From Lepidodermella squamata (taxonomy: Eukaryota > Animalia > Gastrotricha): DNA of 64,000 nt. The notes under the pieces were generated by a model. It had not been told where the DNA came from. It saw nothing but the letters and a program-made list of their open reading frames with translations, and ran no database searches. Of this stretch, positions 51,800-62,429 are shown one piece after another (the first letter of the stretch is position 1; every line of letters starts with the position of its first letter). The stretch is from NCBI GenBank assembly GCA_047495785.1, contig JBLDXI010000046.1:1550001-1614000 (forward strand), read 5' to 3'. The position numbers and the translations under genes are program-made.

Positions 51800-54700
51800 T
51801 TCAACGGGAAGAGCTTCAAAATTTCACACAATATACAAAAGCGAAATTTTGCGTGTTCGCTCATCTCAACGGCCAGTTTTCCGCCTCGGAAACGGGCAAC
51901 GTGACCCAAAACCCAAACAAACCATTTTGCACAATGGAATTGTGGATGATTTGGTATGTAATCGAATTCCCTTTCATTCACAGCTGAAGGAAAGATAGGG
52001 GAGAAGGGTGTGTTACGCAATTAGTAAAAGGGATAGATCGAAGCATGAGTAAGATTATAAAGAGTATAAAGATTAAGATTTTTATAGTAAGAAAACAATA
52101 ATTAATGCTCTTTTTTGAATGAAAGTCTGCTGATCATCGTTACAAAGTTCGATACCGCGGGAGATTATCTGGAGGTGTGGGATCCAAGTTCATCAGTGAA
52201 ATTGCTCTGCGCAATTGGAATGTTCTTCACCGCATCTATCACATCCAGCACGAGTAGCCTATTTGTTTGGTTCTACACTGACAGTATTGGCTCTACTGGA
52301 ACCGACTTTGATATTGTATACAAAGCAGGTATTCCAAAGCTTTATCTATGTGAACAATTAAACAGTTTTCCCACATAGTCACACCGTTGGTGCCCAACAG
52401 GGTCGAAGGTTACATCAAACACGCTGTTTGGGGAGTTGCCGGGAAGGAGTACAATTATAATAGAGACGATTATTGGTATTTAATTGTACCCTCGTCGAGC
52501 GCGATGTGGCTTACTATTGAAACCGGGGCTCTTGATGGCGGCGTTGATTCAGTGTATCTGTACGACGGTGGTTCCACGGGCTCACCATTAATTACGCGTC
52601 TGACAAGACATTACGCGAAACAAGGCTATCTGACAAGCAGCAACAAGCTTGTCGCCAGATTCTACACTGACAATTTGCACCCGATGACAAATGAAGGTGG
52701 CTACTATCTAACATTTGTGGAGTATGACAAAAATCAGTGCCCATCTGGACCTGTCACGCTTAGTGGTGCGTCAGGGAGTTTCGCAAGTGACCACTTCTCC
52801 TACGGGCTGTACGAAAGGACACAACCTTGCATTTGGTGGATTACTGTTACCACAGGAAACGTTATCACCATGACAGTTACTACACACGTGATGGGCGGTT
52901 CATTCAATGACTGGCTCAGCATCTACGACGGAACATCTGGTGGCGCAGCCTTACTTTTCGCTTCCTCCGCTTCTAATTACATTTTGGAGATTACAACTTC
53001 CACGAACTTGGCCAGGGTAGAGTTTAAACCTAACGGTGATCAAAACGTGGGTACTGGATTCAGCATAACTTACACATCTTCACCAGCACCTACTTTCCCT
53101 CTTAACGGTGTTTCTGGCCGATTGAGGTCATTGAACTTCGATTCCAGCCTGAGAACTCAGGTTAATTTGGTTAACGAATGGGTACTTGGCCTTAATGCCG
53201 GTCGGCTATTTTGGTATTCCTTCAAAACGAACTACGTTATAACACCAGGCAGTGACATATTTCAACTACTGGATGGGGCTACAAATGCGTCTGGAATCAT
53301 CGATCAATGGTCGGCTACTTCATCCAATGAGGTCAAGATATCGTCTGGAAACTCAGGATTGACGTCGCTCAAATCAGACATTTTCGGAAACGATATGACT
53401 TTCGACCTTGTGTGGCAGGAAGGTTGGCAAGGATGGACCTGCAATGCTTCAACCATCCTGACAAACAGCACCGGAACGATCAACCACTTCTATTACATGA
53501 CAACGGGGCCGTATGGATATTTTGGTCGCGGTGAGGACTGCAATTGGTTGATAAACGTTCAGAAAGGCTCCCTTGTATGGATAAAGCTTTACGCAAAAAA
53601 CCTGGTTGGCGGCAATTTATACATTTACGACGGGCCAACTACTTCTTCAACGTTGATCATGACAACTACCGGCATGACTTGTTGTAATTGGTATGGACAT
53701 TTATCGTCGACGCAAAATAAAGTTCTGGTTCGTTTCACTTCAACTACCGGGTATACCGTCGGTTCAGGCTTCCAAATCACTTATGCCGAAGTGTCGAGAA
53801 TGCCTTGCCTATCGTATAAAACTGACGGAGAGTTCTCAAGTTCGCAGCTTACTTGTTAGTTAAATTATTTTCAGCCTTTGTATATGTAATAGATACGTGG
53901 GACGTCAGTGTAACCCATGCTACAGGCGTGCTTCAGCCCAATTATTCGCTCCGCCTAGCAACGTCTGCGGCAAACAAATACGGCGCAATGTTCACAAAAA
54001 CTGTAAGAAGGGTTTAAAAGAATCTCATGCTTATTTAAGATGTTTTATGGTATTTTCAAAGCCTCTCATGGCTGTAGCGAAATTCATCATTCGCATCGAT
54101 ATGGTCGTCGGATCATCTGGAACGGGGACTGATGGCGTGGGAGTATTTTTAGCGTTGAAAGCCGCGACAACAACTGCCGCGATTGATTTCTCTATAGACT
54201 GGAAAAACTTCGAAGGCCTCGCTGTTTTCGCTAGACCTTCTTCAAGTTCAATTTATGGGTTGTTCAGCAAAACGCCAGCTGAGATTATCTACGGCCCTTG
54301 TGCACTTGCCGGAAACATCTACCAAACTTGCGCAGGCCAAACCACCCCGTCAATGCGACAGGCAATCACGTTGTTCGTCGCTGTTGAGCCTTCTATCTTG
54401 TCGGTAATTCTGAACGTTCATTCCCTTTCCTATAATTCTAGGAGAATCTTCAAGTATTCGAGTATTCCACTTTTCCTTCTATAAAAACCCTGAAATTTTG
54501 AATTCCTTGGCTATGAAAAGTTTATGATGAAAATTGCAATGTTGTGATATAGCTTTCACGGTAACTTAAAGCTTACATGTGTTTCTATTCGAAAAGGCCA
54601 CCTATTGTGCGAATGGTGTTTGCGGAGTAGCATTTGGCAACAAAGCTTTCGGCCCGATCACATCTATCGTCGACCCACTGGTCTTTGGCATATCAGCTTT

Positions 54701-60700: not shown

Positions 60701-62429
60701 TATGGAGTTTTCCTTCATAGCTCACTGTTTAACGAATTCCTCGCTCAACCCGGCTGTTGCAGGGTCGTTTCAAAGTGACAACTACCCAGGAAACTACTAC
60801 GACAATACAAATTGCGGCTGGCTGTTCGCAATACCAACCAACTCGGCCTTACAGTAATAGATCTCCTGATTTTAGAACTATTGAAACCACACCTTTTTGT
60901 AGGTTGACTATCGATGTTTTCGGGTTGGATCGTCAAGGCGATCAAATCGCAGTTTACGAAAATAATCAGCTGTTAATGCGATCCCCTGGAGGCGGCTATT
61001 CAGCGGTCATTACAACCGAGGGTTCGAAGGCATCATCGACCAGCGTTTTTGTCTACTTCACTTCGAACGCAAATGGCCTGACAGGTTTAGGTTTTAAGGC
61101 TGCATACAAACTGGTTTCGATAAGTGGGCTAGCTGCCACGATTCGCACCCTGAATTCCCAGTATCAGGACAACCAGTTCGACCAGTGGTCCTTCATTGCC
61201 CCTAATAGTTACTCTAATCTCAAGTCAGTTACAAAATCCTCTGGGATTTAATTGTCATTTTTAATATCGTTACCAGGCTATCCGTGTCTACTGCCACGAT
61301 TGGCAATTCAGCTGACAAGATAAAACTTTTCGATGGCGATTCCAATTCGGCACCAATAATTGCAACAGTCATAACTAGCAATACAAACCTGGCTTACCAA
61401 TCAAGCTCGAACAGAGCTTTTATCCAATTTGAAACTGATACAGTTGCAACCGGAACCGGGTTCACGATTCAGCTAACTCCGTTGATACTGCCCGACTGTT
61501 CTGGCACGAGTTACATCAGTGCTACCGAGCTTGGTGGCAGTTTAGCTCCATCTTTGAATTATCCATCGATGGCCTACAAGCATTTTCAGACTTGTTCTTG
61601 GAACATTTCTGTAGCACAAGGATCTTCTGTTTGGCTGGAGCTTACAACCAGAACGATTGATGCACTTGAGACAATAACTATTTACGATGGAAAGAGCCTT
61701 CTCGTCAAAACTTCGACCTCAAACAGCTTCATTGGGAGCTTTATCACAGCTACAAGCTATGCAACGGTACTTTTCGTGAGTACTGGATCCTACTTGGATG
61801 CTAGTGGCTTCTCTCTTGTTTATCGGAAAGGTGAATAATTCAGTTTGTTGTGCTATCCTATTTATCTTTTGGTTTTGCAGCAACGTTTACGAACAGGCTG
61901 TCCTATGTGAACTCTATGAGCTTACCATTTTGGGATAGCTATTCGATAGAGGCTCAACAACCGACAGAAGGCGTACGACTGGTGTCAAACGCGTTCAACG
62001 CAAATGGCGCTATCTGGAATAAATTGGTTTCAGTTTCTCGCATATTTTAATTCTAAATTCTAAAATATTGTTCACATTTTGCAGCCAATCAATATCACAC
62101 AGTTTTACCTTGCGGTGGAGGTATCCATGGCCGCAAGCAGCAATGGACTGGGATTGTTTTTGATCTCGAACACATCTATCATTCGGCAATCGGATTTATC
62201 CGGAAAGAGCTATGGAGTTGATTTCATCGCTGGTTTCATCGGCCTGTCAGTATTTTCACTTGTCCCATCTTCGGCTGTTTTTGCCTCAATTGTTCCGTCT
62301 AATTCGATGACCACTGGCAGAAGTGCATGCGGTTACCTGGGGAATTTGCAGCCAGCGTGTAATGTGGCGGTGAACTTGAAAAGTACCTTCAACCTGACGA
62401 TTTCGTTAACCAACGGCAACCAATTTTCG
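51800..62429 (+). CDS. Giant extracellular protein of repeated (CUB)3-5 - legume/L-type-lectin-like - EGF modules; 5' and 3' ends not resolved
   Basis: About 18 CUB domains (C..W.I, D.L.IYDG, V.F.SD...GF...Y), four lectin-like domains (SLRLT...GAMW/F, G.G.EG.A.F, FG.SA) and EGF exons in four ~2.8-kb units with matching short-intron positions. Last visible exon ends at a GT donor at 62430. Confidence 0.8.

Follow-up and report, generated by a model that had tools for sequence, protein, structure and literature searches.

The question raised by this locus is what kind of protein carries the array of extracellular domains encoded on the + strand at 51.8-62.4 kb of the window, by which we mean the whole analyzed stretch of 64,000 nucleotides from the gastrotrich Lepidodermella squamata. 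The first-pass annotation had described it as a giant multivalent extracellular capture receptor, set beside cubilin, and had listed it up to position 62429. The evidence presented below favors a different reading, which we hold with a probability of about 0.72: one intact gene for a polycystin-1-type receptor/channel subunit with 11 transmembrane (TM) segments, whose ectodomain arose as a cassette of a CUB array, a divergent L-type-lectin-like domain, and EGF was duplicated within the gene. The transcript structure was inferred from reading frames, splice signals, and paralogues, with all searches run exon by exon.

Cassette organization of the ectodomain

The region consists of four cassettes with five, five, five, and three CUB domains, respectively, each followed by a module of about 220 amino acids and by one or more EGF domains, which were recognized from weak Pfam Teneurin-EGF matches below the cut-off and from tblastn comparisons between the units. 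All four large exons match the Pfam CUB family above the cut-off (Table 1), as sought by the HMMER search proposed earlier, and values were also obtained for single pieces, namely CUB1b of unit 3 (E = 2.7e-5), the CUB2 piece of unit 4 (E = 5.7e-6), and CUB2 of unit 2 taken alone (E = 0.0028). The Cys-less segments alternating with these domains are CUB homologues as well, as judged from an hhalign comparison of A5 with A6 (probability 98.6%, E = 1.3e-15 over 109 columns), and the count of 5 + 5 + 5 + 3, already given in the first-pass annotation, therefore follows from the Pfam matches together with this homology. The canonical disulfides are missing from half of the CUB domains of this gene.

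Position-matched domains of the units resemble each other, with unit 2 showing 40% identity to unit 1 over 494 amino acids (E = 2e-103) and 28% identity to unit 3 over 612 amino acids (E = 2e-38). The introns recur at the same positions and in the same phases in all four units, i.e., phase 2 between CUB1a and CUB1b, phase 1 between the last CUB domain (CUB5, or CUB3 in unit 4) and the N-terminal part of the lectin-like module (LecN), and phase 0 between LecN and the module core (LecCore). The paralogy of the units and the conserved intron phases thus bear out the intragenic cassette duplication proposed before.

Table 1. Features of the gene on the + strand. Coordinates refer to the window unless prefixed L009, where they equal the window position minus 62000 (L009:2854 = window 64854).
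Feature	Coordinates	Strand	Basis or remark
Candidate first exon, signal-peptide-like start	48736..48862	+	hypothesis
Unit 1 CUB1 first half	51775..51953	+	open frame, first CUB Cys, GTATGT donor phase 2
Unit 1 CUB1 second half	52126..52328	+	frame-preserving intron on either side; tblastn to unit 2
Unit 1 CUB2-CUB5 (CUB2, CUB4 Cys-less)	52379..53839	+	Pfam CUB E 3.6e-20; hhalign; 40% to unit 2
Unit 1 lectin-like N-terminal strands	53893..54002	+	A4 alignment; splice sites
Unit 1 lectin-like core	54062..54403	+	tblastn to unit 2 module E 2e-19; profile E 2e-36
Unit 1 lectin-like C-terminal strands and EGF	54597..54855	+	A1 alignment; weak Pfam Teneurin-EGF, below cut-off
Unit 2 CUB1 first half	54911..55031	+	acceptor phase 1, donor phase 2
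Unit 2 CUB1 second half to CUB5	55093..56759	+	Pfam CUB E 5.6e-23; hhalign; phase-1 donor at 56759
Unit 2 lectin-like N-terminal strands	56808..56917	+	A4; phase-0 donor
Unit 2 lectin-like core and C-terminal strands (modelled exon)	56974..57499	+	AF2, Foldseek, VIA
Unit 2 EGF	57552..57644	+	tblastn among unit EGFs; splice sites
Unit 3 CUB1 first half, preceded by Cys-rich half-EGF	57699..57897	+	open frame; splice phases 1, 2
Unit 3 CUB1 second half to CUB5	57953..59568	+	Pfam CUB E 1.1e-25, three stretches
Unit 3 lectin-like N-terminal strands	59624..59736	+	A4; splice sites
Unit 3 lectin-like core	59786..60124	+	tblastn E 4e-22; profile E 7e-37
Unit 3 lectin-like C-terminal strands	60201..60375	+	A1; profile E 1.5e-13
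Unit 3 two EGFs	60426..60669 (exons 60426-60503, 60553-60669)	+	tblastn to unit 2 EGF; splice sites
Unit 4 CUB1 first half	60721..60853	+	tblastn; splice phases 1, 2
Unit 4 CUB1 second half and start of Cys-less CUB2	60903..61223	+	open frame; splice sites
Unit 4 remaining CUB2 and CUB3	61277..61830	+	Pfam CUB E 5.5e-14
Unit 4 lectin-like N-terminal strands	61881..62032	+	faint Pfam Lectin_leg-like E 0.022; A4
Unit 4 lectin-like core, last coding exon in window	62085..62429	+	profile E 1e-29; phase-0 donor at 62430
Intron with transposon-like ORF	62430..64000 in window, runs to 64854 (L009:2854)	+	splice reading
Module 4 C-terminal strands	L009:2855-3023	+	beyond window
Two EGFs	L009:3079-3180, 3226-3315	+	beyond window
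Juxtamembrane exons	L009:3368-3507, 3562-4573	+	beyond window
Furin-motif exon	L009:4610-4797	+	beyond window
TM1-PLAT-TM2/3 exon	L009:4851-5964	+	beyond window
TM4/5 exon	L009:6015-6239	+	beyond window
Polycystin-domain and channel exon	L009:6294-8026	+	beyond window

Continuity with a polycystin-1-type membrane half

Position 62429 is the end of the last exon before a 2,425-bp intron (62430 to 64854), and the gene continues past the window. Module 4 is split by this intron, with its C-terminal strands lying beyond it, and is followed by further EGFs and polycystin-1 (PC1)-like exons without an in-frame stop, which is why we regard the whole as one continuous gene. It comprises at least 32 exons and, with the ATG at 51775 taken as the start, about 4,660 codons (a protein of about 4,660 amino acids), and its ectodomain of about 3,200 amino acids includes 18 CUB domains, 4 lectin-like domains, and about 7 EGFs in total. 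All of the 31 junctions show a frame-preserving GT-AG intron, mostly of 45-60 bp.

Channel sequences beyond 64 kb, which the first-pass annotation had suggested looking for, are indeed present, as Pfam yields Polycystin_dom (E = 7.3e-28) and PKD_channel (E = 2.3e-22) for L009:6263-8026, and the channel region matches PKD2L1, PC2, PKD1L3, and PC1 among the PDB sequences. Within the PDB sequence set, the preceding stretch L009:4851-5996 has human polycystin-1 chains as its sole matches (E = 1.4e-15, 6a70_B residues 33-342), the Pfam PLAT match stays below the cut-off (E = 0.009), and the 11 hydrophobic segments follow a 3 + 2 + 6 pattern. The region is therefore better described as the ectodomain of a polycystin-1-family protein than by comparison with cubilin or with a capture receptor standing on its own. 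Direct reading of the GPS position before TM1 (at the start of L009:4851) revealed neither Cys nor His-Leu-Thr/Ser, and an R-A-K-R motif of the furin type is present in the exon preceding the TM1 exon. For the juxtamembrane exon L009:3562-4587, the AF2 model reached a pLDDT of 49 and gave the latrophilin GAIN domain as first Foldseek match (E = 0.03, TM 0.19), and none of the exons scanned matched a Pfam REJ module at the sequence level.

Since the 2.4-kb intron with its transposable element (TE) breaks up the region, one might alternatively assume two genes, namely one for a secreted giant CUB/lectin-like/EGF protein that would terminate behind the EGFs, followed just downstream by a separate polycystin-1-like gene lacking a head. 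We consider this arrangement very unlikely, because module 4 itself straddles the intron, all junctions from the EGFs to the juxtamembrane exons are short frame-preserving introns of 45-55 bp without any in-frame stop, and the membrane half has no ATG or signal peptide of its own to start from. Moreover, the same order of head, EGFs, juxtamembrane region, and channel is found in the upstream paralogue as well as in the C66 paralogue.

At the 5' end of the gene, neither the ATG at 51775 nor the remaining sequence next to the first CUB exon yielded a signal peptide, a Pfam scan of the upstream open frames was also empty, and a similarity search with the first exon of the C66 gene gave no match. 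As an alternative start, the first exon of unit 1 may begin at a phase-1 acceptor, e.g., at 51842. The candidate exon at 48736..48862 contains the only ATG frame in 46990-51790 which combines a basic n-region, a hydrophobic core of about 20 amino acids, and a strong GTAAGG donor in phase 1, i.e., the phase required by the candidate acceptors at 51788, 51800, 51812, and 51842. Because this sole signal-peptide candidate is located 2.9 kb upstream, the gene could be 5'-truncated.

The first CUB exon without a signal peptide and the two transposon-like insertions close by, a TIR element at 49419-51032 and a 541-aa ORF on the - strand of the large intron (62728-64350; no matches in a Pfam scan), might be taken as signs of a decaying or 5'-truncated pseudogene, whose architecture would have no present function. 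This appears improbable, if slightly less so than the assumption of two genes, because about 14 kb of coding sequence contain no frameshift or internal stop after removal of the canonical introns, the cassette copies have diverged down to 28-40% identity with Cys patterns and motifs still kept, both insertions are intronic or intergenic, and a phase-matched candidate signal exon is available. A pseudogene, one of the cases named at the outset as contradicting the cassette interpretation, is thus given little weight, and the reading as one intact gene is retained.

Fold and putative binding site of the lectin-like module

The predicted fold of the module was assessed with the unit 2 exon, which was modelled without the N-terminal strands and yielded an AF2 model with a pLDDT of 79 and a pTM of 0.81. 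As recommended in the first-pass annotation, the model was submitted to Foldseek, which returned ERGIC-53 at the top (E = 5e-7, TM 0.70) and only ERGIC-53, VIP36, Emp46/47, and legume lectins among the top 30 or so matches. A VIA superposition with p58/ERGIC-53 aligned 159 of 176 residues (Z = 14.7, rmsd 2.6 Å), the L-type lectins scoring at Z = 14.7, 14.2, 13.8, 12.7, and 12.0 and other ConA-like folds at 10.8 or less, and all named Atlas neighbours of the model belong to L-type lectin families. As the model matches L-type lectins best, the earlier assignment of these segments to the L-type lectin fold is upheld for the predicted structure. In addition, the N-terminus of the module aligns with that of the genome's own canonical L-type lectin (A4), including an invariant W and a near-invariant RL, and agreement with the genome's VIP36-like gene is seen in the motifs of the N-terminal strands, the GDG loop, and the C-terminal strands.

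Sequence-based searches were far less productive. No family was found in Pfam for the module core exons or for single-exon paralogue modules, and the proposed HMMER search for Lectin_leg-like or Lectin_legB produced only two faint matches to L-type lectin models, both below the cut-off (E = 0.022 for Lectin_leg-like at 61835-62047 of the window, and E = 0.0063 for the external protein P0009). The module profile recovered nothing from the PDB sequences at E values up to 10, a word-based protein search started from the module exon yielded no match among 187 candidates, and hhalign gave a weak profile comparison with the canonical L-type lectin (E = 0.001, probability 20%). The case for homology beyond a shared fold comes mainly from the structure prediction and the short motifs, since Pfam is blank and the profile comparison weak. 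The lack of significant Pfam or PDB sequence matches, together with Z values of 10-10.8 for ConA-like folds outside the L-type lectins, would also be consistent with another jelly roll, e.g., LamG, the thrombospondin C-terminal domain, or a galectin-like domain, that merely superposes on L-type lectins without kinship. There is little likelihood of this, as the L-type lectins score 1.2 to 4 Z units above every other fold with 159 of 176 residues covered, occupy the top Foldseek ranks exclusively, and account for both independent faint Pfam matches; the agreement of the three motifs with the VIP36-like gene and the Atlas neighbours, all within the L-type lectin clan, point in the same direction. 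On the basis of the predicted model, the module belongs to the L-type lectin fold as an unannotated and very divergent branch.

As judged from the sequence, the usual sugar/calcium site of the module seems to be lost. In the only residue-level alignment obtained for the D-x-(F/Y)-x-N loop, a weak one (E = 0.001), unit 2 has Y-R-P-P-L-E where the VIP36-like gene of the genome shows the canonical L-D-T-Y-S-N, and the module consensus at this position is not acidic. The same weak alignment places the Asp position of the (A/G)DG loop, which is D in unit 1, E in units 2 and 3, N in unit 4, and D in most paralogues, on the canonical F-G-D-G. Four conserved Cys are located in a stretch replacing what we take to be the loop region of the binding His in ERGIC-53. 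The first-pass annotation had proposed a multivalent extracellular receptor capturing glycans or proteins, of which the extracellular receptor role is retained; glycan capture is not supported, because the canonical Ca2+/sugar loop appears not to be kept. Modules working as Ca2+-dependent, sugar-binding L-type lectins in a multivalent glycan-capture receptor would be compatible with the predicted fold, with the Asp position of the (A/G)DG loop, at which three of the four copies still have D or E, and with the sugar-binding lectin domains of the polycystin-1 relatives human PC-1 and sea urchin REJ (PMC7728438). Nevertheless, this is an unlikely function, given the non-acidic residues at the D-x-(F/Y)-x-N position in that weak alignment, the Cys-containing stretch substituting for the His loop, and the fact that the true L-type lectins of the genome reach 1e-29 against Pfam, where this module finds nothing.

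Paralogues, proposed function, and comparison with known systems

About 36 paralogous juxtamembrane regions were found across the genome, and the lectin-like module occurs in at least 82 stretches of it. Among 1.84 billion public representative proteins, matches to the module were limited to 12, all of them from ENA/Logan contigs (P0001-P0012). At another locus of this genome (L004), the same module with the same phase-0 intron is located on a Cys-loop channel subunit. It is conceivable, and proposed here only tentatively, that the module, which is always paired with EGF, represents a hitherto unnamed branch of the L-type lectin fold, extracellular and massively expanded in this meiofaunal lineage, which is used as a plug-in sensor head on two unrelated ion-channel scaffolds (polycystin-1-like and Cys-loop) and also in secreted tandem arrays. 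If true, the animal would build a large repertoire for chemosensation, contact sensing, or immune recognition in that heads of the CUB, lectin-like, EGF, and fibrinogen types are shuffled onto its channels. Current family libraries miss the module, and its addition would annotate many blank ectodomains in this genome.

Polycystin-1-family proteins are thought to sense ligands or mechanical input, and their ligands are mostly unknown. The long arm of the protein described here may act as a multivalent head sensing ligands or contacts, in which the lectin-like domains would probably bind something other than mannose-type glycans via the canonical Ca2+ site. Like the N-terminal lectin domain of human PC-1, the arm might regulate a TRPP-type channel complex that includes a polycystin-2-like partner. 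As the self-cleaving GPS residues are absent, it may be released or re-tethered through cleavage at the furin-type R-A-K-R site. The head of 18 CUB and four lectin-fold domains, together with dozens of paralogues with other heads, provides a natural domain-swap series for the effect of the ectodomain on the channel. In C. elegans, polycystins act together with membrane proteins containing EGF as well as C-type lectin modules (PMC11968823).

Among the closest counterparts are the members of the polycystin-1 family (human PKD1, PKD1L1-3, and PKDREJ, sea urchin suREJ, and C. elegans LOV-1), which share the order of TM1, PLAT, and TM2-5 followed by a TRPP-like six-TM part with the polycystin/TOP domain, as well as a very large modular ectodomain including lectin-type and EGF modules, and the juxtamembrane region of our gene occupies the place of their GAIN/GPS region. 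However, its head consists of CUB/L-type-lectin-like/EGF cassettes instead of LRR, WSC, C-type lectin, PKD repeats, and REJ, and it shows no Pfam REJ match, no GPS self-cleavage residues, and a furin-type motif upstream. A literature search found no paper on such a head of a polycystin-1-type protein. The adjoining fibrinogen-headed gene (window 35304-46993) is a tandem paralogue with EGFs ahead of the juxtamembrane region and a collinear C-terminal half (25%, 50%, and 40% identity), but contains four fibrinogen-related domains in the distal ectodomain in place of the CUB/lectin-like cassettes.

Arrays of CUB domains with EGF modules serve multivalent protein-ligand binding in cubilin, C1r/C1s/MASP, SCUBE, and attractin, none of which, to our knowledge, carries L-type-lectin-fold domains or a polycystin membrane half. 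The best structural matches of the lectin-like module, ERGIC-53/LMAN1, VIP36, and Emp46p/47p, share with it the N-terminal W...RL...G.W motif, the (A/G)DG loop, and the C-terminal strand pair. They are single-domain luminal cargo receptors of the ER-Golgi route with a Ca2+-dependent mannose site, whereas the module described here is extracellular, always followed by EGF, equipped with four extra conserved Cys, below Pfam detection, and apparently devoid of the D-x-(F/Y)-x-N loop. Besides the single cargo receptors of the ER-Golgi route, the L-type lectin fold of animals would thereby include a form that is extracellular, disulfide-bonded, and EGF-coupled. The plant L-type lectin receptor kinases likewise present a legume-lectin-fold ectodomain on a membrane protein used in signalling, in which the sugar-binding residues are poorly conserved and non-sugar ligands have been reported; they differ in having an unrelated membrane and signalling part, with a kinase rather than a channel subunit, and a single lectin domain. 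Finally, the Cys-loop channels of this genome also carry the lectin-like module on an ion-channel subunit, but combine it with another channel scaffold and a mucin-like stalk and contain no CUB cassettes.

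Cassette structure and 5' end of the window gene

In the predicted polycystin-1-like window gene, the + strand from about 51.8 kb up to the end of the window is made of extended exons free of stops, with very short introns between them. Its junctions were examined by coordinates and phase, with searches run exon by exon, and at every one the reading frame is preserved across a canonical GT-AG intron, in most cases of 45-60 bp. CUB domains pass the Pfam cut-off in each of the four large exons, with E values between 3.6e-20 and 1.1e-25 in the first three and of 5.5e-14 in the fourth. 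When these exons are split at their internal periodicity, canonical Cys-bearing CUBs alternate with Cys-less segments, some of which give sub-threshold CUB scores in Pfam when taken alone (E 0.003-0.005). Profile-profile comparison nevertheless matches the Cys-less segments to the canonical CUBs over 109 columns (98.6% probability, E 1.3e-15), and each of units 1-3 of the repeated cassette (CUB array, lectin-like module, EGF) is therefore assigned five CUBs and unit 4 three, the same count as proposed in the first-pass annotation. Unit 1 shares 40% identity with unit 2 over 494 aa, and unit 3 shares 28% with unit 2 over 612 aa; as judged from the sequence, units 1-4 are paralogous along their whole length. 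The introns recur in the same phases in all four units, namely 2 at CUB1a/CUB1b, 1 between the last CUB and the N-terminal piece of the lectin-like module and 0 between this piece and the module core, and a phase-1 junction from EGF to the next CUB1a recurs across units. The cassette was thus copied along with its introns, and the earlier proposal of a duplication with introns at matching places agrees with both the inter-unit identities and the recurring phases.

From an ATG at 51775 as far as the stop that follows L009:8026 (L009 being the locus that continues past the window end, with coordinates of the window minus 62000), the exon lengths give an in-phase total of 13,986 nt, or 4,662 codons. 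No signal peptide was found from this ATG. The first CUB exon has several candidate phase-1 acceptors, and 48736-48862 is the sole phase-matched, signal-like exon candidate, with an element bounded by terminal inverted repeats (49419-51032) intervening. If the ATG at 51775 is the true start, the protein has no signal peptide, and a TATAAATA box at 51700-51715, about 60 bp 5' of the ATG, could be a candidate promoter mark. The intervening element carries inverted repeats of 55-63 nt at its bounds (95-98% complementary) and a 99-nt direct repeat (49508-49606 and 50934-51032, 95% identical). It is located between the two polycystin-like genes and probably represents a transposon of the non-autonomous type.

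Fold of the lectin-like module

The module exons match no Pfam family, save for a faint Lectin_leg-like score in unit 4, where it falls on the N-terminal piece (E 0.022); a word-based protein search with the module and a search of its profile against PDB sequences were likewise without match. A profile of the module copies retrieved 12 of the 1.84 billion proteins of a representative library at E values up to 0.001 (top 1.4e-12), all from ENA/Logan contigs. The two longest of these share the order of CUB array, module, EGF(s) and CUBs, and an EGF directly follows the module in every match long enough to judge. In the 121-Mb genome itself, the module profile picks out at least 82 module stretches, which are spread over more than 20 contigs and densely clustered on C7.

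The exon with the core and C-terminal strands of the unit 2 module (176 aa) was modelled with AlphaFold from a 25-row alignment (pLDDT 79, pTM 0.81). Foldseek places ERGIC-53, VIP36 and Emp46p/47p at the top, followed by legume lectins (E 5e-7, TM 0.70, identity 12-15%). A second, independent search with VIA-align, covering 48,161 chains, ranks p58/ERGIC-53 first (Z 14.7 at an rmsd of 2.6 A over 159 of 176 residues), followed by an Entamoeba leg-like lectin (14.2), VIP36 (13.8), Emp47p (12.7) and peanut lectin (12.0), and gives other ConA-like folds Z values of at most 10.8. All family-named neighbours of the module in ESM-Atlas belong to L-type lectin families, which is minor evidence because the query recognition value falls slightly under the mark of the tool. 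The canonical L-type lectins of the same genome are readily detected by Pfam, and exon-by-exon reading reveals the same motif order as in the module: an N-terminal W...RL...G.W, an (A/G)DG loop, an F.GL strand and, at the C-terminus, two paired strands closing with D..(H/V)DI.S..FY. One of these canonical genes carries a TM helix in addition to a long coiled tail rich in Gln. The structure matches to the model together with this common order support the L-type lectin fold that had been proposed for the module, and make a distant homology likely.

The accompanying idea of glycan capture fares less well. In a weak alignment of the module profile with a canonical L-type lectin (E 0.001, probability 20%), the canonical Ca2+/sugar loop L-D-T-Y-S-N is set against Y-R-P-P-L-E, and the module differs from canonical L-type lectins by four conserved Cys in the intervening loops. 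Judged from these sequence features, canonical Ca2+-dependent sugar binding is therefore unlikely.

The membrane half beyond the window

The last exon in the window ends at 62429. The intron after it, of 2,425 bp, holds an intact 541-aa ORF on the - strand (window 62728-64350, L009:728-2350). This ORF has no Pfam match and appears transposon-like, its motifs recalling a transposase by eye. The remainder of the gene (see table) contains 3+2+6 = 11 hydrophobic segments by hydropathy and ends in Polycystin_dom and PKD_channel, so that the channel C-terminus suspected past 64 kb was indeed found. The GPS position contains neither Cys nor His-Leu-Thr/Ser, and processing would be furin-type rather than autocatalytic. 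A GAIN fold of the juxtamembrane region is not confirmed, because its structure model is poor and the GAIN matches are not significant. The C-terminal half is collinear with that of the upstream fibrinogen-headed polycystin-1-like gene in the window (successive blocks are 25%, 50% and 40% identical).

Features of the window gene past the window and of other loci in the genome
Feature	Location	Strand	Remarks
Module 4 C-terminal strands	L009, past the 2,425-bp intron, outside the window	+	Profile E 2e-13
Two EGFs	L009, after module 4 strands	+	
Juxtamembrane region	L009, after the EGFs	+	
R-A-K-R motif exon	L009, after juxtamembrane region	+	
TM1-PLAT-TM2/3 block	L009, after R-A-K-R exon	+	E 1.4e-15, human polycystin-1 only among all PDB sequences
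Channel block	L009, last	+	Pfam Polycystin_dom 7e-28, PKD_channel 2e-22
Second polycystin-1-like gene, CUB/lectin-like/EGF head (L005, L017)	C66:~650800-664200	-	Two modules
Module near juxtamembrane match	C3:~619-624 kb	-	
Module near juxtamembrane match	C9:~4.911-4.920 Mb	+	
Module near juxtamembrane match	C24:~4.183-4.187 Mb	+	
Module gene L004	C24:4928127-4931531		Exons L004:~1038-1262, 1321-2041, 2093-3405
Module gene L008	C7:4176616-4179843		Signal peptide, tandem modules
Module gene L007	C7:4437566-4440988		Signal peptide, tandem modules
VIP36/ERGIC-53-like gene, canonical L-type lectin (L011/L012/L015)	C21:~1846600-1847500		Pfam E 1.6e-29
Second canonical L-type lectin gene, Gln-rich tail (L013/L014)	C55:~1187200-1187800		Pfam E 6.6e-18

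Other module genes and comparison with known polycystins

The paralogue on C66 is arranged as CUBs, module, EGFs, CUBs, module, about nine EGFs and the same membrane half, the latter with 40-67% identity to that of the window gene. Ahead of its first CUB exon lies a short open frame whose start weakly resembles a signal peptide. On C3, C9 and C24, comparison of coordinates also places modules 3-8 kb upstream of same-strand polycystin-1-like juxtamembrane matches, which suggests more polycystin-1-like genes with the module in their heads. L004 combines a signal peptide, one module with the phase-0 intron of the window gene and a Thr/Ala-rich stalk; in-frame splicing to an exon of a Cys-loop channel (Neur_chan_LBD E 2.5e-12, Neur_chan_memb E 9e-8) is possible across a phase-1 intron of 51 bp. 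L007 and L008 are secreted-looking, with Thr-rich linkers between the modules, and the cluster at C7:4.17-4.55 Mb contains dozens of module matches in 400 kb.

The polycystin-1 family varies its ectodomain, and our literature search found no paper on a relative with CUB or L-type-lectin-fold domains. The L-type-lectin-like module, lineage-expanded and without a family name, is the most interesting element. Solved complexes reportedly pair 11-TM with polycystin-2-type subunits, as in PC1/PC2 and PKD1L3/PKD2L1, and entries of both are present among the PDB matches to the window gene. Its 11-TM half would likewise pair with a polycystin-2-type subunit. The arm of about 3,200 aa (18 CUBs, four lectin-fold domains and EGF spacers) may serve as a multivalent binding surface and, by analogy, would act as a sensor of an external ligand or surface, modulating the channel. 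For human PC-1, the head has been applied in soluble form (PMC7728438). The polycystins of C. elegans act together with membrane proteins that bear EGF as well as C-type-lectin modules, which are supplied in trans (PMC11968823).
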